From positions 5,022,001 through 5,086,000 of the forward strand of contig OU015568.1 in assembly GCA_907165135.1 (NCBI GenBank): DNA of 64,000 nucleotides, written 5' to 3'. The translations under genes were made by a program, and so were the position numbers. Below, piece by piece: positions 36,189-49,689 of this stretch. Below the pieces are notes generated by a model, which saw nothing but the letters and a program-made list of their open reading frames with translations, did no database searches and was not told the origin of the DNA. Source of the stretch: Oikopleura dioica. Taxonomy: Eukaryota; Animalia; Chordata. How positions within the stretch are numbered: position 1 is the stretch's first letter; each line of letters begins with the position of its first letter.

Positions 36189-38543
36189 ATGACTAAAATT
36201 GAAGCTGCTAGTAGAGAAATGGAAGAAACCGACTTTGGTGTTGAAAATAAAAAGGTAAGAAAAATGCTCTAACAAATTGTATCTTTTGTTGAAAACAAAA
36301 GCCTCCGATTTTATCATCCGGGATTCGTCATTTTAAATAAATTCAAAAATCACGAATGAAACCAATTTTGCCGTATTCAATTGAGATACACGAATTGATT
36401 CAGAGTTCTTCCGAAGAAAACATAGAAGATGAAGTGGCAGAGAAAGGAGCAGAAGATGACTTTGAAAACTTCGAGTACAGTTTGGCCAAGGATTTGGAGC
36501 ACTGTACTACTTGGAGCTTTGGCTTAGGAAAGGGGATTTTTCTCTCAGATGATTTTTCTTGAAAGAAGGAAAATCTCTTGCAGTGATTTACTGGCCATTC
36601 ATGAAGATTCGACAGCTCTATCATTCCCATCCTCGGATCCCGCTGTATTTGGGGATTCTTTTTGCCATCGGGCTCCTCATTTTCGCGATTTTCGCGATGG
36701 TCAGAAACTTCACTTCGCATGGAGTTGTTTTCCTCACCCTGGGAGTCCTGGTCGGTCTTTTCAAAGGCTGGGACTGGTTGGACTCTAAGAACAATTACAA
36801 AGGCCCACAGCTGAGTTCATTCCAGAAAAAGACTCAGGTTCAAAATAGGCTTCTTTGGTAAATTTCATTAGAATGCGTTTTGAACCCTTTTCTAGTTAGG
36901 CAACTGGATATTTGGTGGATTATTTTTATGCTTTGCGGTTGCTTATGCTCTTTGGGTAGGTCATTTCAGCTTGCCATTTTGATCAATTTCATTCTAGACT
37001 GCTTTTGGCAAGAGCGGAATGAACCCTCAAAACTTGATCGGCATCACGGGCCTGGTTTCATATATTCTTCTATCGATCATCCTGTCCGTTGCGCCTCATA
37101 GAATCCGATGGCGGCCAGTTTTCTGGGGCATCGGAACTCAGGAACGAGCTCTTATTTAGTAGGAAAAGATTGTAGGAAGGCGACTAATATCATGACTCGA
37201 GGAAAATATCAAGCGACTGTATAAATTCGCATTTATCAAGCTCGCAGTATATCGCCGCAGTCATCGTTCTCCACACAGAATGGGGCTACGCAGCATTCGA
37301 GTGGCTAGGAGAAATCATTTCGAAGTTCGTTTCCTACGCTGCTTTTGGGGTCGATTTTCTCTTTGGAGAATCCTTTCCAACCGACAACTTTGCCTTCGCA
37401 GTGCTACCGATCATCATCTTTTTCTCCATGGTCACGAGCATGCTCTACTACGTCGGTTTCTTACAGTACATTATCAAAAAACTCGCATGGCTCTTCTCCT
37501 ATTTCTTCGGGACAACTGGACCGGAAAGTATGACGACAGTAGGGAACATGTTCTTGTCAATGACGGAGTCGCCACTTTTGATCAAGCCGCACATTGAAAA
37601 CCTCACAAACGCGGAAATTTTCGCCGTCATGACGGCCGGTTTTGCCAGCATTGCTGGATCCGTTCTCGGCGGATACATCGCACTGGGGATTTCTGCCGCT
37701 CATTTACTGACAGCTACAGTCATGAGCGCGCCGGCAGCCTTGGCCATCGCGAAGATAATGCACCCGGAAGTGCAGGTCTCTAGATATGCGGGAGGAAAAG
37801 TGGCGGAAAGTGAAAAACTCGACGCTGGAAATGTCATCGAAGCTGCTTCTCGTGGAATTTCAGATGCAATCATGGTCGTTATGAACGTCGCGGCAAATCT
37901 TCTCGGATTTGTGGCGATTCAAAATTTACTCGATGATATTTTGGCCTGGCTTGGAAACTCGGTTGATCAACCAGGATGGAGCTTTTCGGGACTTCTTGGC
38001 TACATCTTTTATCCATTCGTAATCGTGATGGGAATCGAGCCCGGAGATGCAATTGCTTCAGCTAGATTGGTCGGAACAAAGACGTTTTTCAATGAATTTA
38101 TAGCATTTTTGGACCTTTCGGAGATGATCAAACTCAGAGAATCAGGCATTGGTTAAATTTAATTCAATAATTTATTAATCCAGTTTTTCAAACCAATCAA
38201 AGGCGCTTGCAAATGCTCTGATTCCGGCCAAGTTCAATGGCTCAATCAACGCTCCGAAGCCTTGGTCACTTACGCCCTTTGCGGCTTCTCAAACTTCGCC
38301 TCTGTCGGAATCATGATTGGTGCCATGAGCTCTCTCGCCCCAAAAAGAGCTCCTACTTTCGCAAAACTGGCTGTGAGAGCGCTTGCTGCAGGAACGATTG
38401 CATGTCTTTGCACTGGCTGCATGGTCTCAATTTTGTACGTCGATGATGGTCGAGAATTTCTGTGGAATGGGATCGATATTTCGTCTTTCGAGATTTTTGA
38501 TTGTGAGATTCGAGACACAAATGGCACTGTACTTCCTTGCTAA
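36189..38543 (+). CDS. SLC28A: Concentrative nucleoside transporter (SLC28/CNT)
   Basis: FAFAVLPIIIFFS, GPESMTTVGNMFLSMTESPLLIKP, AGFASIAGSV, TKTFFNEFIAF, YALCGFSNFASVGI. Confidence 0.93.
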
Positions 38544-38850
38544 CTGTAAATAAATGAAAATATGTCACTTGATTTTTGACATTGAATAGTTGAGTCATTA
38601 AAACGTCAATTACGCTCATTATTCCTTGACCTTGAAAATCCCATTTCAATTTTCGAGAAAAGATCGAATAATCCAGCTCCGTATTGAATAAAATCATAAT
38701 TCGGAAAATTCTGCATTTCGACATTTTTTTCAAATGTCACTCAAATCAGCAAACCCCATCCGAATCGGCGATTGTTGAATAAAGCTGGGGCGATTTCAGA
38801 AATTCAGATCCAGAATTCATTTTCAATCCAAACCGCTCAAGTGGTGGACG

Positions 38851-41800
38851 ATGAATTTAGAGAAATTTACCCTGCTGCTGGGGACGCTGGCCTCGGCGGA
38901 CAGGTCGATTAGAGAATCAGACGGCTTCAACTATAAACCGCTCTACCTCAGCTCAAATGTCGCTCCATTCCCCCTTATCGATTTTGACGGAAGTTTGAGT
39001 AGAAGTGCTACCAGTAAAACTGTCCAGGTCGATGATGGAACCGGCCCAGTTCCAATTCCAGAAGCTCTTGCCGGCTCTGGCATCACCTCTGCCGGATGCA
39101 ATACACAAGATGCCGACTTTGGCTACCCCGACTGCATGCCTTGGACTGTCTACAACGGTAAAATCCTCTTCCGACTGTCCGGCTACGAATATGGCCGAGC
39201 AAGAGCTAACGAAGCTTGTCAAGCGATGGGTGGCTGGCTCGCCATCCCTTTTACTGAGCAAGACAATCAAGACATCAACAACTTTCTTGACGCTGCTCTT
39301 GGTGAACCTAACGATCTGGTGCTTGCTGGCGCGACGGCTGGAACTGAATCATGGTTCGCTCCGATGGCCAATATCGAAGTCGTCAATGGTGTCCAGCAGC
39401 TCATGTGGTTCGGACAGCAGTGCAAAGGATTCCATCTTTGTACCCATTTTCGAGACAAGCCCTCAGCTGGTTTTTGGGATGATTGTCCGGATTGTGCTCA
39501 ATGTGATAGTAACTGCCCTGATATCCCCGTCTACACCTACACAGGTTTTTCTCCAAATGACTCTCCACAGCCCCACTGCATGATGTACAAGATTCTGGCC
39601 GATCCATCTGTCACTTTTGGCAACGAATTTTACTGGAACGAAGCTAACTGCGATCGAAAACTCCCGGCTCTCTGTGAAATCGATTTCAAAGAAGTCGGCT
39701 GCAATGCTTTTGGCATGGAGAATATCTCTTCTCCTAAATGGAAAGTTGACTGTACGACCTACGAGTACTGTGATGCTGGAACCATTGTCATGGAAAGCTG
39801 TCCTCCAGGAACTCTTTTTAACCAATTTGCTGATCCACCAGATTGCCAGGATCCATCTCTTGTTGAAGACTGTAACGTCGACGAGTGCGAGACTGGTGAA
39901 GCAACATGCGATCCAGTTGGAATCTGTGAAGATACCATCGGCTCATATGATTGTTCCTGTGGTCCAGGATTCATCGAAGTTGAAGCAAATGCCACTCTTC
40001 CAGATAACTCAACAGCCGATTCTCATACCTGCTGGGACATCAACGAGTGCGACGACCCAACACTTTTCGAATGCGTCATCGATTCTGGTTGTTCAAACAC
40101 CATTGGCTCGTACGAGTGCATTTGTGATCAATGGCTTGCTCCTTCGGCCCTTGATGCTGACGGAAACCCCGTAAGCTGCATCGACGATGATGAATGTACT
40201 CGGCCAGATTCTTGTGGACCAAATACTGTTTGCGCGAATACCTTCCCTGGTTATTATTGCTCCTGTGCGATGGGATTCTACGATGAGGGATCAGAAACTG
40301 AACAAGGTGCTTGGGATCGAATCGATAACGGTGTTCTTGTCAACGAGAACTCAACCTACATTCCAATGGTCAACGGCTCTATCATCATTGGCGACGGAAC
40401 AATTTGCGTTGATGCTGACGAGTGCGATGCTGAACGAGATGCCTGTCCAGCAGAAAAACTCAATGTTTGCACGAACACTCCGGGATCTTTCGTCTGTGAA
40501 TGCGCTCCGGGAACTCGATACATCAACCAAACTGTCTCCGATGAATGTGAAGATATCGACGAGTGCACTGAGCTTACTTTTGTCTGTGACCCTAACGCTG
40601 CTTGTGTTAACGACATCATGGACTACCTCAAGCTGATCGCTGGAGATTTGGTCACTTATCACTGTGAATGCAGACCTGGTTTGAATGCCACGGATGTTGA
40701 CGGCTTTGAGTATCAAATTTGTGAAAATGTCGATGAATGTGCTCAGCCAGATAACAGTACATGGGCTGACATTTGTGGCGATTATGCAATCTGCACTGAT
40801 GCTTATCCTTACTATTTCGAAGCTGACCCGGTTGCTGGAACTGATGCCTATCAACAAGTTCCTTACACTTGCAGCTGCCCAGAGGGTTTCATCGTGAATG
40901 AGACGAACTCAGACCTTCCACCTTTCAGCGAATTCGCTCCTCATGAAGAACAATATGCTTTCACTTGTTCAGATAGAAACGAGTGCGACTTTGACAAATA
41001 CGGATCCTACTTCTGTGATTTAAACAATGCTGATGGCTGTGGAAACACAATAGGAAGTTTTTACTGCAGTTGCCGAGAAGGTTACGGAAACACTGCTAGC
41101 GGAGGTTGTGGAGACAACAACGAGTGCTCGGATGAAGGACTCATGTACACCTGCGAAGGAGCGAATCCTAACTGCACCAGAGGTATCGATTGCGTTCAAT
41201 GCGTGAACACGGCCGGTAGTTACATTTGCGGATGTAACGAAGGATGGGATTTTGTCGGAAGCTACGCGAACCATCAACGTCTTGAAGCACTTCCTCTTGC
41301 CAATTGTACTCTTTGTGATGACTGGGACGAAGCTGTCAATGGATCATGCACTCTTTGTGGCCCTATGTGCGTCAACTACAACGAATGTCTCAACGGCCAA
41401 TCAGAATGTGGTGTCGGCTGGACATTGACTGGCATTCTTACCGGTGACAATGTCACGTGTACTGATACAACTGGTTCATACTACTGCACTTGCCCCGAAG
41501 GATTTTACACAGCTGATTTCAACACTTTCGACAATCCCCTCTTCGGAGAATATCCTCCAAGAACTGGCGAAAAGAATCCGAACGGCGGATATGACAAGAA
41601 ATGCTACGACATCGATGAGTGTAAATATAACATGTGTGGTCAGCCGAACCAGCTGTGCTTCAACAATATTGGTTCCTATGAGTGTGGCTGCGCAAATGGC
41701 TACGAACCCACTACTTACTGCGTCTGGGAAGGACTTGCTAATGAGACTTGCATTGAAGTTTGCATTGATATCAATGAATGTGACGACAATTCTACTTGTA

Positions 41801-44800
41801 TTCATACTGCTACTGGTTCAGACACATGTACTAATACTGAAGGAAGTTACATCTGCGAGTGCGGAGCTGGATACATTCAGCATACCAATCTCACTGTGAA
41901 TGTTGAAGAGGGCGATGATGCTGGTACAGTTTACAATATCACCAACTATCTTCAGTGCGAAGACATCAATGAGTGCGACGACTACACATCCTACTGTCAC
42001 GTTGACTCTAATTGTAACAATACTGATGGATCTTACTCCTGCTGGTGCGATGATTGGCGGTTCATAGACGTTTATGGAAACGGAACACTTTGTGAAGATC
42101 TCGACGAGTGTCAAGGTTATAATGCTTGCAATGCAACAACTGGCTCAGAATGCCACAATCATTATGGCGGCTACACTTGTCTCTGCGCAGATGGATACCG
42201 ACCGGACGGCACTTACAATGTCACAGTTGCCAACTCGATTTGTGAAGATATTCCTGAGTGCGAGGAACAGGTCGATACTTGCGTTACCGATCCGCATGAG
42301 GACACTGAATCATTCCCTTGGACTCTCGAAGAGCCTTACTGCAGTAACAGCTCGGATATTGCTGCTAATAATCGATGCGGATTGCAAGCAAGTTGTAAGA
42401 ATACACCGGGATCTTTCGAGTGCACTTGTAACTACCCATACACCTTCGGAGACGGTATTGCTGGAGGTGTTGGAACAGGCTGTAACTACCCTCGCGAATG
42501 TATCCTCGGACAACATACTTGCCCGTCTATGGCTGATGTTCAATCTCGCCATCCTGATATTGTCTTCGAAGCTGAACCAGTTGAGTGCTACGAACAGCCG
42601 TATTTCTACCAGTGCCGATGCACCACTGGCTTCTTCCCTCTTCCAGATGGGCAAACCTGCGACACTTTTGATTTTGCTCCATACGCTGATGAGATCGCAG
42701 AATACGAAAATAACCAAAAAGGACTTTGGTGTGACGACTACAACTACACTATTGGTGGCGACGGAGTTGTGAATGAGACAGTTGTTTACTACGCTTGTAT
42801 TGACATCGATGAGTGCGCTGGATCTCAAGTCGACTTCTGCAGCACCAATGCCGACTGTGATAATACCGTCGGATCGTACATGTGCACTTGCCAGCCAGGC
42901 TGGGAAGGAGATGGACGAACTGACTCGACAGATTGCTCAAACATTAACGAGTGTGACACTGGAGCTCATCAATGTCCAACTGATGATGACTCAGCAGAAT
43001 GTGTTGATACACAGGGAAGCTACTACTGTTTCTGCAAGGACGGATACAAAGATGTTACTGCTAGTCTTAATGCGACAGAATGCGCTGATTGCGATGAATG
43101 CACTGATAATCTTCACCAATGCGACGGGCTCGCAACATGCTCCAACAGCATCGGATCGTACGACTGCGCGTGTATTACCGGATACGATGGTACTGGATTC
43201 GCTGGCGACTGTAACGATATTGACGAGTGTGCGACTGGAGACAACGATTGTCATCCAAGATCTCTTTGTGTTAACAATATCGGATCATTCGAGTGTTTCT
43301 GCGTTGATGGATTTGAGGGTGACGGTCGAACACTCAATGCTTCTTTCGTTGGATGCATTGACACTGATGAATGTACCGAAGGACTTCATAACTGTAATGA
43401 ACTAGCTGGATGTGTCAATACCGAAGGTTCCTTCGCATGCAAGTGTAATGAAGGATATCTTGGTAATGCTCTCAATGTCACAAACAACGCCACAAGCGGT
43501 GATGGTTGCTACGACATGGACGAGTGCGATTCCGTTGTCGATCTTTGCGGTGTTTTTGCCGATTGCTCGAACACTGTCGGTTCATATTTCTGTAACTGTA
43601 CCGAGCCTGGTTACAAACCAGCTGCAAATGGCTACGATTGCGAGGATATCGACGAGTGCGACGCTCTCTCTTGCGCTGACTTCGACGCCTGCCCTGATTG
43701 CGATGCCAATCGAGGAACATGCATCAACTTGCCAGGAAACTACACTTGCGAATGCCAGGAAGGATACAACGGAACTGCTCGAGGAAATAATACTTGCTTT
43801 GAAATCGACCAGTGCAGTCTTGGAATCGCCTCTTGTCCGGTTAACGCCACTTGTGTTGAGCTGACTTATGCCGAGGGCGATTACAGATGCGATTGTCACG
43901 AGGGTTTTGAAAAGGTCAACGTTTATTGCCGAGATATTGATGAATGCCAAAACGCAACGATGATCAATTGCGACACGAATGCGAATTGTATCAACACAGA
44001 AGGAAGCTTCCAATGCGAATGCATCGAAGGATACTCTGGCGATGGCGTCACTTGCACAAACGTAGATGAATGCGTCGATCCGTCAACAAATCCTTGCAGC
44101 GCAAATGCTACTTGTACCGATAATGAAGGGTCCTACGAATGCAATTGTAAGACTGGATACCTCGGCGATGGAGAGCTTTGCTTCGACGAAGATGAATGTC
44201 TCAGTGGTAATCACAATTGCTGTGGAGTGGCTGGATGTGTTTGTACGAACATTGAGTCCTGGTACACTTGCGGCTGCGAAGATGGTTTCTCTGGAAATGG
44301 CTTTTTGCTGTCCGAGGTTTGACCATTTTATAAGCGCTACTCTTTTTAAAATTATTAGAAAATGAGATTAATTCCCGGTGTTAACTGACACGTCTGATAA
44401 CAAATACTTTACAATTTCAGCTTAAAGGATTATCAAAATATATTAAAAGAAAGGAAATTAAACAAGATTATGGTTTTATTTATTCTATAAAGGTCGGTGG
44501 AACCGCTTGTGGAAACCAGAACGAATGTCTCGATGGCAGCCACAATTGCGATACTAACAGCTCTGCTATTTGTATGGACTCTTCTGGAGGATTCACATGT
44601 TCATGCCCTAGTGGTACCACTGGAGACGGAGTCAAGGTCTCTGAAGGTGGCTCAAGCTGTGTTGACATAGATGAATGTGCTGATTGCAGCACTGGCGGCG
44701 CTGGTTGCCCATGTAGCCAGAATGGAAACTGCACCAACACTTTCGGTTCTTTCTCCTGTGCTTGTCTCGCTGGATTCTCCGGTAAATTATTTTCTAGAGC

Positions 44801-47763
44801 TATATATTCAAATTTGTCTAGGCGATGGTAAGACATGTCTTGATATCAATGAATGTCAGACAGACAATGGCGGCTGTGATCCAGTCAACGGAGAATGTAT
44901 CAATACACAACCTGGCAACGAGTGCAAGTGCTCTGAGGGATGGACTGGAGATGGAGTTACCTGTACGAATATCAACGAGTGCGACCTGGTGCCAAATCCT
45001 TGCGTGAATAAGACTCATTCAAGTAAGATTTATGAATCTTTCTGGAAACTATTTCCTCCTTTAGCTTGCTCGGACAACGACGGTTCTTACGACTGCATCT
45101 GCGATACCGGCTACCTCGACGTTGCTGACCAGTGTCAGGATCAAGACGAATGTATCATGGACCCGAGCACTCTTCCATTCTCCTGCTCAGCTTCCGATCC
45201 TACTTTCAACAAGTGCGTGAACACCGACGGTTCTTACGAGTGTCAGTGTATCACCGGCTACACCGATGTCGCCGGAACATGTACCGATGATGATGAATGC
45301 GCTGATCCTTCAAGTTGCCAGGCAAACGCTGACTGCACGAACTTGCCTGGAACATTCGAGTGTAACTGTGCCTCTGGATACCAAGACTCCATCGATCAGA
45401 CCGAGTGTGTCGATGTGAATGAATGCATTGGTAAAACTCGCCAAGCGCTTGCTTTATCTAATAATTATTCTTAGCTTGTTACCAAGGAAGCCCAAGCTGC
45501 CCTTGTGGAGCAAACACCTGGTGCACAAATGAAGAACCCGGATTCGTCTGTACCTGCCTCCCTGGCTACGATTTTGCCTCAAACGGTGTCGACTGTGAAG
45601 ACATCGACGAATGCACTGAAAACGCTCATGATTGCGGCGACCACGAAGTTTGCTCAAACGAGCCCGGAGGATTTTCGTGCCCATGCGAAGATGGTTACTC
45701 AAAGTCAACAACAGGAGATGATACATGTGTCGATACGAATGAGTGCATTCCATGTGATTCTGATCCTCGAGATTTCTTCAATTGTCCTTGCCCGAATACC
45801 GCCTCTTGTGTCAACACCGGTAAAAATCTAGTCTCGAAATATGGTTCTTACAGTTTTCTAGATGGAGGCCACGAGTGCTGGTGCCCACTTGGATGGTGGA
45901 TGTCAGAGGACGAATGCGTCGACGTCGATGAATGTGACGCTCCGGAATACCTTGCCGCTCAGACCTACTGGGACGATGCTGCCGCTGCCGAAGCTGGTGG
46001 AGACTTCCACGAGGCTGGCATGACTCGACGATCTGCTGGTAAAATTAAGATTTTCTTTTGAAAAAATAATTTTTCTATTTCTAGACGATCCAAATGCTGG
46101 ATGCTCTGATCTCGAGAATTGCTTGAACAACGACGGATCATTCACCTGCGAATGCATCGAAGGATACCAGCGAATCGTCAACACAACTGACTGCGAGGAC
46201 ATCGATGAATGCTCAGTTGATGGTTATTGCCCAACCATCGGAACAACTTGCACGAACACAGACGGTTCCTTCATCTGTGAATGCCAAGAAGGCTTCAATG
46301 CAATCATCGTCGGCGGAAAACTAGTCCAATGTGGCGATGTCAACGAATGCTCTCAAGATCCTTTCATTTGCGGCAACCAAGCTACCTGTGTTAATACCTT
46401 CGGAGCATTCAACTGTCAGTGTCTTTCTGGATTCGAAGCCAATCCCGCCGGAACAGGATGCGTTGATGTGAATGAGTGCGAAACTGGAAATCATCTTTGC
46501 CAGCAAAACTTCCCACTTGACTGCGTCAACATTGAGGGCAGTTACACTTGCGTCATTCCTCCAGGTAAAATCACAAATGAAGAGTTTCCGCTTATTATTT
46601 TCAGGACTTGTTCTCGACGGCAAGATCGTGCTTGAGTGGCTCATCGAGCTCCAAGAACAGCTCAATAAAAACAACACCAACACTTTGAATAACAACCAGA
46701 CTATTGACGCTCAATTTTTCAACAACACCGGCAGCGGAACAACTACGCCTGGTCCTGATATTGGAATAAACGACTTCAATAGTTCAGATTCTTTCACATC
46801 AACCCTTCCTCCAGGAGTGACCAATCCTCCGCAACCACCACCAAGCAACAACACTGGCGATAATGGCGAAGGAACGAGTTTAGAAATTTCCAAAAAAATT
46901 ATCATCAATTTGAACAGGTTTTTAAAACTCATGAAAAGGTGAGACTTCTGGCGATCCTCACGTCCGAGTCAGTACTAAATTCGGAACGCCGATTTGCTTC
47001 AATTTCCATGGTGATAACGGGCGATTCGTCGATCTTCTGTCAGATCCGGTCACGAACTTCGAGGTCAATGCGGAAATCAAATCCACAGGGGCTATCACTC
47101 GCTTTATTGCTGTAGGCTTGGTGTACTCAAACGGTGGGGTGACTCATACGATCAAATGCGACGAAGATGGAGTCGTGATTCAGAATAACGGGGAAACTGT
47201 TGGTACTTATCCTTACGCAGATACTTCCATGTAAGAGCAATTTCTTAGTTAAAAGAAGTAATTTCGTATTTAGCCGAAATCATGGAGATATTGAGCTCTC
47301 TGACAACCCTGGTCATCGAGCAGGAGTCACGATCAAGATCCAAAACGTCGCCGAGTTCGTTGTCACCTTCAAGGACCGAAACCACAAAAAGGCCGACAAA
47401 GGTGTCTTTATCGATGACAATCATTCCATGGGTTTCCGAACTGTCAACACTGACGGTATCTCTCATGCAGCTACTGGTATCATCGGACAGTTTATCACAC
47501 CTTTCGCTTATGATACGATCGAGGACACAAGCCCCAACTTCGTTGTCTTCCAGTAAGCGCCTTTATCTTTTACTTCTTCTACAAGTATTTCTAGTAACCG
47601 TCACGTCCCCGCAGAGCAGGAGTTCTTCCATGGCCTTGACTACTGCATGAAAGTTCAAGACGCTCTCATCCCAACTCTACTCGGAAACGAAATAAGCGCA
47701 TACTATTCTGAAAGTCTTTTTGGCGTCAATGATCCAGCAAATATGATGGATATCATGAGCTAG
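38851..47763 (+). CDS. Giant secreted matrix protein: CTLD + CBM14 chitin-binding + ~39 calcium-binding EGF + GDPH/ITIH-C-like domain
   Basis: Signal peptide and a CTLD at the start, a six-Cys CBM14 pattern at 39699-39873, and repeated DIDEC/NEC modules (about 39 counted by eye). GDPH at 46950-46961; stop at 47761-47763. Confidence 0.88.
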
Positions 47764-47925
47764 AAAGTTTCTCAACCAAATCTTTGTACAGCTTAATAAC
47801 TCACGGCAAAGGCCGATACTAACAAATGTGAAAGAAAATTGTACAGTACTAACATCTCAACTTTCTGTAAATAAATAATAACATGAATTCTTCATTTTCT
47901 GTTGGGAAAGATCTTGGATAGATAT

Positions 47926-49689
47926 TTATTGCTTGAGCAGCCATTCGAACTGAGAAGAATTTGCAGGATCATTAGAATAAGGCGCTGAGCGTCGCTTGAG
48001 CAGGAATTGAGGTGTTCCAACATCCATAACACTCTTGTAATGCTTAAAATGCTCAAGTAAGAGTAGAAAATTTCAAAAACCACCGACCGAGAAAGTATGG
48101 AACGAGGCTTTTCCGTGATAAGCGCCAATACCAGACTCTCCAACGCCGCCAAATGGAAGAGTTTCCGGAGAAATATGCATGATGGTGTCGTTGATGCACA
48201 TGCCACCGGAGCTAACTTCGCTAACCCAGCGATTGATGATCTTCTTATCGTGAGCTACGCAAGAATCAAACCCCTCCTTTATAATAAAACTTTACCGAAG
48301 CAATAAGCAGCAAGAGGTTTTTCAAGGGAATGGACTTTAGAGAGGGCATCGTCAAAGTTATCAACAGTGACGATTGGTAGGATGGGGCCAAAGAGCTCTT
48401 CTTCCATCAAAATGTCGTCCATTGTGACATCGGTGACAACAGTCGGCTCGATGAAGCATGTCTTCTCGTCAAAATTTCCTCCGTGGACGACTTTTCCCTT
48501 CGTCTTTCCTAAAACAATAGTCAAAAATAGCAAATTGGATTGAAATTACCGAGGAGGCCAACAAGACGCTTGTAATGCCTCTCCGTCACCATCTTTCCGC
48601 TGTAGCAGTCCGAAATCTTCGGTCCTTCGGGATAAAACTCCGAAAAGATTTTCTTCAGTTCCGGCACCAATCGATCCCTAGAGCATTCTTGAGAAAGTTC
48701 TAGAAGAAAACCAACTCACCTGGTAGATTTGGTGCAGAGCAAATAGTTGGGAGCAATGCAAATTTGACCAGAATTGATGACCTTGCCAAAAAGAATTCTC
48801 TTCGCAGCGAGGTTCAGGTCGTAACCGTCATCGACCCAGCATGGGTTCTGTCCGCCAAGTTCCAGGACGCAAGGCTAAAATGAATAGATACGGAAAGTAG
48901 GGGACAAACATACAGTCAGATGCTCAGCAGCGGCTTTGTAAACAATCTTTCCAATTTTGGTTCCTCCTGTGAAGAAAATCAAGTCGTATCTCTCTTTCAG
49001 CATTTTGGTCGCACCCTCTGGGCCTTCAACAAAGACAGGGAATGCATCAGGGTCGAGGTATTTCGGGAGAACATCATAGATCATTTTCGATGAAGACTTC
49101 GCTACTTCTGATGGCTTTACTATCGCCGTACAACCAGCGCCTATAATGGTCTTCAACCAGTTTTCCCCCAAAACCTTACCGATAGCGCCGACAAGAGGAT
49201 TCAAGCACAAGTCAAAAGGATAGTTCCATGCTCCCATGATCAATACAGTTCCCAGCGGTTCTGGATGTCTGTACAAACTGTTCGTCATGTTCATCATGCC
49301 TCCAGAAACCTTCTCGTCCTTCATCATGCTTTTGCCGTTTTTGAGCATGAAGTTGACTGCATTTTTCATGTTCATCCATTCGATAGTCAGCTCCAAATGC
49401 GGTCGACCAAGATCGGCTTTGATCGCGTCAAAAATTGCTTGTTTTTCATTGTCTGAAAATTCCCGATCATATGATAGTCGAAGTTATGAAATGAATCGTG
49501 ATCTTTGACCAAGAAAATATTTGCTCTAAAGGTCACCCAGTTTTATTGCTTACCCAAAAACTTTAAAAACTGCTTCAGTTGCGTCTCCCTCCATTCCCAG
49601 CTCCGAGTAACACCGGACTTGAAGACATCCTTGGATTTGTTGATCCTGGCCAGTTTAGCAGCCCATTCAGCATCTGTACTTGCGGCCAT
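47926..49689 (-). CDS. ALDH3: Aldehyde dehydrogenase family 3
   Basis: [42 protein letters not shown] (catalytic Cys), [25 protein letters not shown]. Confidence 0.93.

Follow-up and report, generated by a model that had tools for sequence, protein, structure and literature searches.

A larvacean EGF-rod gene with an ITI_HC_C-type C-terminal domain and a GDPH motif: a candidate polysaccharide cross-linker

The gene and its transcript

We analysed a stretch of 64,000 nt from the larvacean tunicate Oikopleura dioica (assembly GCA_907165135.1, contig OU015568.1, positions 5,022,001 to 5,086,000 of the forward strand), hereafter called the window and numbered from its first letter. The gene described here encodes a secreted matrix protein of ~300 kDa. 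[quoted passage not shown] A GDPH motif stands where the linker meets this domain.

The exon model was built from stop-free frames and GT-AG sites. It describes a single gene of 11 exons and 8337 nt (2778 codons plus the stop codon), the ends of which, 38851 and 47763, are the ATG and the final base of the stop codon; an earlier reading of the DNA, referred to below as the first-pass annotation, had proposed the same limits. Exon 1 is one open frame of 1822 codons starting at the ATG, and ten short exons follow it. All introns are of the GT-AG type and, intron 1 (176 nt) apart, 40-61 nt long; phase 1 is shared by six introns in a row. The GC content of ~45%, together with the tiny introns and compact spacing, fits a larvacean genome. 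The features of the gene are as follows.

38851-47763, plus strand: the whole gene
38851-44316, 44493-44781, 44822-45022 and 45065-45430, plus strand: exons 1-4 (gene model)
45475-45819, 45862-46038, 46085-46564 and 46605-46877, plus strand: exons 5-8 (gene model)
46939-47230, 47274-47552 and 47595-47763, plus strand: exons 9-11 (gene model)
46939-47763, plus strand: ITI_HC_C-type C-terminal domain, exons 9-11 (Pfam, embedding neighbours)
46950-46961, plus strand: GDPH motif, with a putative scissile bond between Asp (46953-46955) and Pro (46956-46958)
46605-46877, plus strand: linker, exon 8, cysteine-free and rich in Asn, Pro and Thr; begins with the conserved LVLDGKIVLEWLIELQEQL and ends with TGDNGEGT
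45862-46038, plus strand: non-EGF spacer CWCPLGWWMSEDEC...APEYLAAQTYWDDAAAAEAGGDFHEAGMTRRSA, exon 6 (95% identity with the orthologous contig L011)
39874-46564, plus strand: array of ~40 EGF/cbEGF modules, exons 1-7 (Pfam, cysteine and motif counts)
39736-39873, plus strand: CBM14 (peritrophin-A) chitin-binding domain, residues 296-341 (Pfam CBM_14)
39097-39705, plus strand: tentative CTLD-like region ending in WNEANCDRKLPALCE (Pfam Lectin_C below its cut-off)
38851-38898, plus strand: predicted signal peptide of 16 residues, MNLEKFTLLLGTLASA (read by eye from the sequence)

Continuity between the EGF array and the 3' exons was supported by natural transcripts. Exon 9, used to scan metagenome contigs, yielded five loci at ~90% protein identity, two of them genomic (L008 and L009) and three spliced (L010, L011 and L012). 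A single 730-residue frame in L011 begins among the EGF modules, continues across the linker and the GDPH domain and ends at the stop codon, and L010 additionally crosses the exon 1/2 junction (...GNGFLTSE/VGGTAC...). Exons 5-11 of the window align end to end with the L011 frame, neighbouring exons being separated by exactly one split-codon residue, and every junction from exon 1/2 to exon 10/11 is mirrored in L010 and L011. The joints of introns 3, 4, 7 and 9 were observed exactly as modelled in contigs of a plankton metatranscriptome (X1), one of which joins the last EGF exon to the linker exon. In addition, 13 reads of RNA run X6, which represents a diverged lineage filed under the same species name, have alignments beginning at 46938/46939 and carry linker sequence (...TGDNGD...) upstream, which is the exon 8/9 junction. 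As the spliced contigs run from the EGF array to the stop codon and exons 5-11 match them, the exons for the linker and the GDPH domain are part of the same gene as the EGF array; that they might belong to a separate gene, as the first-pass annotation had allowed, was not borne out.

Two irregularities were met among these data. We discounted a joint in X6 at 47516-47802 (GA..CT, side 22) as an artefact of mapping. In L010, the frame shifts within an EGF module (1938-2256), with two overlapping open frames; as the L011 frame is continuous there, an assembly error or a variant in L010 is the probable cause.

The protein encoded by the window was scanned exon by exon, and L011 served as a proxy for the whole C-terminal domain. 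Pfam recognised the CBM_14 domain proposed in the first-pass annotation (24.0 bits, cut-off 22.1, E = 4.3e-5), and chitin binding is predicted. The CTLD proposed for the same head is tentative: the ending and other CTLD-like motifs were found by eye, but Lectin_C reached only 16.1 bits (E = 0.02, cut-off 22.6) over the C-terminal third of its profile, and a PDB sequence search with the N-terminal region gave no match. The rod was recognised with far higher scores, with EGF_CA at 417.8 bits in exon 1; hits to EGF_CA, EGF_3, cEGF and other such families were spread over exons 1-5 and 7. With 276 cysteines in total, 32 CxC..G[FYW] signatures and 29 D.[DN]EC signatures, we counted ~40 EGF modules, close to the ~39 given before. 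Pfam scans of all exons found only EGF-type families, CBM_14 and the weak Lectin_C match in the body of the protein, with no VIT and no VWA, and scans of the EGF exons found no TB (8-Cys) family. A word search with the first 420 residues encoded by exon 1 retrieved only EGF matches of other proteins and no annotated orthologue.

The spacer in exon 6 interrupts the rod and is the best-conserved exon. At its end lies a basic cluster, TRRS in the window and RRRRE in the distant orthologous contig L013 (6211-6300), which may be a proprotein-convertase site splitting the rod in two; fibrillins are cut by convertases near their ends. A second Asp-Pro-His occurs within the EGF array (TDPHED, ~42530-42560, exon 1, ...CVTDPHEDTESF...; KDPHED in L013 at 2522). 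This second motif is unlikely to be cleaved, as it lacks both the Gly and the domain context.

The gene has a neighbour on either side. Upstream, at 37401-38545 on the plus strand, lies an SLC28-like gene for a concentrative nucleoside transporter, the coding sequence of which ends ~300 nt before the ATG; the two genes may form an operon. Downstream, at 48000-49400 on the minus strand, lies an aldehyde dehydrogenase-like gene.

The C-terminal domain and its GDPH motif

The C-terminal domain was assigned to the ITIH type by Pfam and by language-model embeddings. Exon 10 of the window alone matched ITI_HC_C (PF06668) with 27.6 bits (E = 2.7e-6, gathering threshold 27), and the whole domain of the orthologue (L011, 1454-2191) did so with 30.2 bits (E = 4.1e-7), its residues 48-178 corresponding to profile positions 20-139 of 189. 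ITI_HC_C was also the top family for each of five relatives known as exon fragments (E = 2e-4 to 4e-3, same profile positions), and two JGI orthologues (P0016 and P0017) carry a precomputed PF06668 assignment beside EGF families. The nearest embedding neighbours of the whole domain were three ITI_HC_C clusters (0.95, 0.94 and 0.92, with 190-208 shared features). More distant neighbours were Root_cap, DUF1521, which we take to be another GD/PH autocleaving family, and VWD, the clusters of which lay at 0.80-0.83. Exon 9 alone, which Pfam did not detect, had ITI_HC_C as its nearest named neighbour, followed by VWD and DUF1521; we treat this as a lead only. The first-pass annotation had recognised an ITIH-type end from a sequence motif, and the profile and embedding matches extend this recognition beyond the motif. 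Judged by the Pfam gathering threshold, the tail domain is a real ITI_HC_C homologue.

The length of the domain agrees with this assignment. Counted from the Pro of GDPH, 240 residues precede the stop codon in the window and 241 in L011; human HC1 and HC2 lose pro-domains of 239 and 244 residues, respectively (PMC7170535). GDPH likewise stands at the start of the corresponding domain in ITIH3, 5 and 6 (PMC10880436, section 2.7). The Pfam VWD family (PF00094) did not match the window exons or the L011 domain at E up to 1, and no cysteine was found upstream in the linker. PDB sequence searches with exon 9, exon 10, the whole domain and a family profile returned nothing meaningful.

The peptide quoted in the first-pass annotation, SGDPHVRVSTKFGTPICFNFHGDNGRFVDLLSDPVTNFEVNAEIK, is encoded at 46947-47081 on the plus strand, in exon 9, with GDPH near its start and the cysteine-free exon before it. 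The motif thereby sits where a flexible, sequon-bearing tail meets a terminal domain with three cysteines (CFNF, KCDED and DYCM). Read from this distribution of cysteines, none can tie the two sides of GDPH together; the fragments would not be joined by a disulfide, unlike those of FCGBP and of the VWD domains of mucins (PMC8267560). [quoted passage not shown] In a VWD domain, this autocleavage depends on both the Asp and the His (PMC10880436, section 2.4), and the topology of VWD is also predicted for the pro-domains of ITIH (PMC10880436).

Conservation is lowest in the linker exon (66% identity with L011), which has five NxS/T sequons in its Asn/Thr/Pro-rich part, and Pfam scans found no family in the linker of the window or of L011. 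An acidic, Gly-rich stretch before GDPH, TGDNG(D/E)GE, is kept in three lineages (46850-46877 in the window, ~1420-1453 in L011 and 9250-9285 in L013). The linker ends with TGDNGDGE in both L011 and L013, the rest of it not being conserved. This stretch could form either a loop that binds calcium or the domain's first strand.

Relatives were found at several depths of divergence. Over exons 9-11, the window and L011 share 75-79% of their DNA sequence, with dN of 0.05-0.13 and saturated dS. With so few amino acid changes against saturated synonymous sites, the whole C-terminal domain is under strong purifying selection. RNA runs X6-X8 match the gene at only 90-95%, in patches (44200-47900); given these patches and the synonymous saturation against L011, the shared species label covers deeply diverged lineages. 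A much more distant orthologue is represented by marine metagenome contigs of 15-18 kb (L013-L016) with the same layout, namely a collinear EGF array, a glycosylated linker, a GDPH exon, and exon 10- and 11-like exons. Its GDPH exon reads KVAGDPHIMVSCRGQKPICF...RFVDLLSD and aligns with exon 9 of the window without gaps at 43% identity, with GDPH, PICF and RFVDLLSD intact. The junction between linker and GDPH exon in L013 (9280-9400) has no obvious in-phase GT-AG pair and may be a non-canonical intron; such introns occur in Oikopleura.

Further lineages, all from marine plankton samples, are known from fragments of exons 10 and 11 that share DNHSMG, DGISH, GQFI.P.AY, NFVVF and the terminal VPTLLG...Y.V.SLF. 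In two protein searches able to admit long proteins, an exhaustive phmmer search with exon 10 and a word search with the L011 domain, only larvacean-like marine sequences were significant. The word search and a family-profile search found only close orthologues and exon fragments, and the proteins returned by the profile search had 58-161 residues. The phmmer search gave five short marine-metagenome exon fragments only, with no ITIH at E = 0.001 and no full-length protein. When the short fragments were aligned by MAFFT, rows A1, A2 and A4 were misplaced; A3 and A5 were kept after trimming.

GDPH itself was present in all five close loci (L008-L012), P0016, P0017, the distant orthologue and the X6 reads, and all four of its residues are invariant in every lineage seen. 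This pattern, and the selection on the domain behind the motif, bear on the question of whether the chain is cut at all. Conservation of the whole domain and of its far C-terminal end fits a lasting function better than a discarded pro-peptide, and cleavage is unproven in many GDPH-bearing domains. The domain might then remain on the chain and serve in binding or self-assembly, for instance by polymerising rods end to end or by docking to another oikosin, with GDPH in a structural role. However, the ITIH pro-domains are likewise conserved and yet removed, and here GDPH stays invariant while its flanks vary, its Asp and His being exactly the residues that are essential for cleavage (PMC10880436). 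We regard an uncut chain as quite improbable.

Cleavage and coupling at the GDPH motif

The reading that we favour is that GDPH self-cleaves, the pro-domain is released and the activated Asp is captured by a sugar hydroxyl, to which we assign a probability of about 0.4. It is taken as the most likely one because the arrangement around GDPH is ITIH-like, not mucin-like. In the secretory pathway, the folded pro-domain would strain the Asp-Pro bond of GDPH. The Asp side chain would then attack its own peptide carbonyl, breaking the chain and releasing the pro-domain, which begins with PHVRV. The rod would be left ending in ...ETSGD, its C-terminal Asp being a reactive anhydride. Capture of this anhydride by a sugar hydroxyl, as in ITIH, would form an ester to a matrix polysaccharide, which might be a chain of glycosaminoglycan, or else cellulose or chitin in the house or mucus. 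With chitin-like fibres held non-covalently by the head, one molecule could bridge two polymers ~100 nm apart. Taken separately, cleavage at GDPH seems probable, and covalent capture by a polysaccharide somewhat less likely than not.

This reading has a precedent. After GDPH cleavage, the Asp of ITIH3 forms an ester to C6 of GalNAc (reviewed in PMC8267560); this GalNAc belongs to bikunin's chondroitin sulfate chain, and ITIH loses its pro-domain (PMC8267560, PMC7170535). Polysaccharides that could act as acceptors are present in the animal. The house contains cellulose and heparan sulfate proteoglycans (PMC3390340), and oikoplastic cells express chitin synthases (bioRxiv 10.64898/2026.03.31.715263).

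Cleavage does not have to lead to coupling. FCGBP is cut at every one of its GDPH sites and forms no detectable cross-links or other covalent adducts, its Asp anhydride being hydrolysed (PMC8267560), and VWD domains are stabilised by the cleavage itself (PMC10880436). By analogy, the pro-domain of the larvacean protein might be an intramolecular chaperone or secretion-control module that is discarded or stays bound non-covalently once water has opened the anhydride, and the mature protein would be a non-covalent, fibrillin-like rod with a lectin/chitin-binding head. The GDPH and ITI_HC_C evidence fits such an outcome equally well. In FCGBP, however, the new C-terminus is buried and disulfides tie the fragments, whereas here the motif follows a flexible cysteine-free tail, as in the ITIH chains that do couple (PMC7170535), and the nearest family by sequence is ITIH, not VWD. 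We consider cleavage with simple hydrolysis possible but doubtful.

Several points weigh against capture of a cleaved Asp by a polysaccharide, in addition to the behaviour of FCGBP. The Pfam scores (27.6 and 30.2 bits against 27) barely exceed the threshold. The ITI_HC_C profile begins ~25 residues past GDPH and leaves the motif outside the match, so that GDPH is assigned as the ITIH site by its position and not by a residue-level alignment with ITIH; the ITIH consensus around the cleavage site that we presume here is taken in part from PMC8267560 and PMC10880436. Two AlphaFold2 runs with shallow alignments gave beta-rich but unusable models (mean pLDDT of 30.9 and 37.6), as exon 9 is covered by only two or three lineages; the domain of ITIH3, 5 and 6 is predicted to be a beta sandwich with GDPH between its first two strands (PMC10880436). 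For coupling, ITIH depends on a particular partner (bikunin's chondroitin sulfate chain), whereas here no partner or TSG-6-like transferase was found, none having been sought. Cleavage and ester are proposed from the sequence, and the presence of the protein in the house and expression of the gene in house cells are inferred as well. Of the cross-linker proposed in the first-pass annotation, then, the homology, the architecture and the position of GDPH have stood, and the cleavage, the ester, the acceptor and the house are its conjectural part.

Relation to known matrix proteins

GDPH motifs are documented in VWD and ITIH domains (PMC10880436), and the larvacean protein resembles the latter more closely. 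It shares with ITIH a C-terminal domain of ~240 residues that comes last in the protein and matches ITI_HC_C at threshold, the position of GDPH at the N-terminal edge of this domain after a flexible tail, and the lack of a disulfide across the site. It differs in its body, which consists of the CTLD-like region, CBM14 and ~40 EGF modules in place of VIT and VWA, in being three times longer, and in its low sequence similarity (30 bits). Because VIT and VWA are absent from the body, the domain content identifies it not as an ITIH heavy chain but as a new architecture, found only in larvacean-like marine sequences.

With the VWD proteins (MUC2, MUC5AC, FCGBP, SUSD2 and BMPER) and RGM it shares a GDPH followed by a hydrophobic strand, here GDPHVRV; the RGM motif is GDPHLRTF. 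In FCGBP and the mucins, a disulfide holds the fragments together, and the Asp is buried and merely hydrolysed (PMC8267560). The larvacean protein differs from them in having no Pfam VWD match, no C8 or TIL partners and no cysteine upstream of GDPH. Long arrays of calcium-binding EGF modules recall fibrillin, but Pfam found no TB/8-Cys domains here; on these domain assignments the protein is not a true fibrillin, and "fibrillin-like" describes the rod only. The kinds of domain are all known, and their combination (CTLD-like, CBM14, ~40 EGF and an ITI_HC_C pro-domain) is new.

The nearest named candidate is Oik19, described as the "fibrillin-1 homolog" of the house, with EGF, chitin-binding and C-lectin domains (Hosp et al. 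2012, PMC3390340). It is expressed in giant Fol cells, is listed at 153 kDa, and its signal peptide is predicted to be cleaved at position 16 (PMC3390340). The domain list and the 16-residue signal peptide are as in the present gene, and the mass is different (153 versus ~300 kDa). The Oik19 probe primers were absent from the window and related loci at up to three mismatches, the best placements (7-10 mismatches) being noise. The window is synonymously saturated against the only relative compared, and if the Norwegian strain used for the primers is comparably diverged, they need not match. Given this saturated divergence and possibly truncated early gene models, the gene may be Oik19, a paralogue or an unnamed one. 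The paper of Hosp et al. 2012 says nothing of an ITI or GDPH domain, and a literature search found no paper connecting Oikopleura with the inter-alpha-trypsin inhibitor.

The house is not the only site at which such a protein might act. CBM14 is typical of peritrophic and gut chitin matrices, and Hosp et al. 2012 list no oikosin of ~300 kDa, a gap that is joined by the missing primer matches. The protein might accordingly belong to the gut or pharyngeal mucus, a chitin barrier or basement-membrane microfibrils, with its GDPH tail tethered to a proteoglycan in the manner of the ITIH-hyaluronan matrices of vertebrates. On the other hand, the oikoplastic epithelium expresses fibrillin-like EGF genes as well as the chitin synthases (bioRxiv 10.64898/2026.03.31.715263), Oik19 offers a house protein with the same domain list and predicted signal-peptide cleavage, and the transcripts are abundant enough to have been assembled from plankton metatranscriptomes. 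A site of action outside the house appears rather unlikely to us.

To our knowledge, ITIH heavy chains on chondroitin sulfate and hyaluronan are essentially the one system in which a protein is joined covalently to a polysaccharide by an ester of its C-terminal Asp; there the attachment stabilises matrices in ovulation and inflammation. Oikopleura builds a cellulose- and protein-based filter house and discards it every few hours. The papers on this house have left open how its fibres are cross-linked, a matter for which, in the house or in mucus, the gene is a concrete candidate. In larvaceans, the ITIH pro-domain may have been transferred to a chitin-binding EGF rod resembling fibrillin, and the Asp anhydride that it generates may join this structural protein by an ester directly to a fibre polysaccharide of the house or mucus net (cellulose, chitin or a glycosaminoglycan), with no need for bikunin or TSG-6. 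We hold this full scenario to be speculative and, as a whole, unlikely; if true, it would be a second independent natural system for stapling proteins to polysaccharides besides that of ITIH with chondroitin and hyaluronan. The occurrence of the same pro-domain and conserved cleavage motif on a different scaffold points to a portable "self-activating sticky end", a module that, if it works as proposed, could serve for conjugation of proteins to cellulose or chitin. The ITIH pro-domain would then be older than the VIT-VWA heavy chains, or would have spread beyond them.

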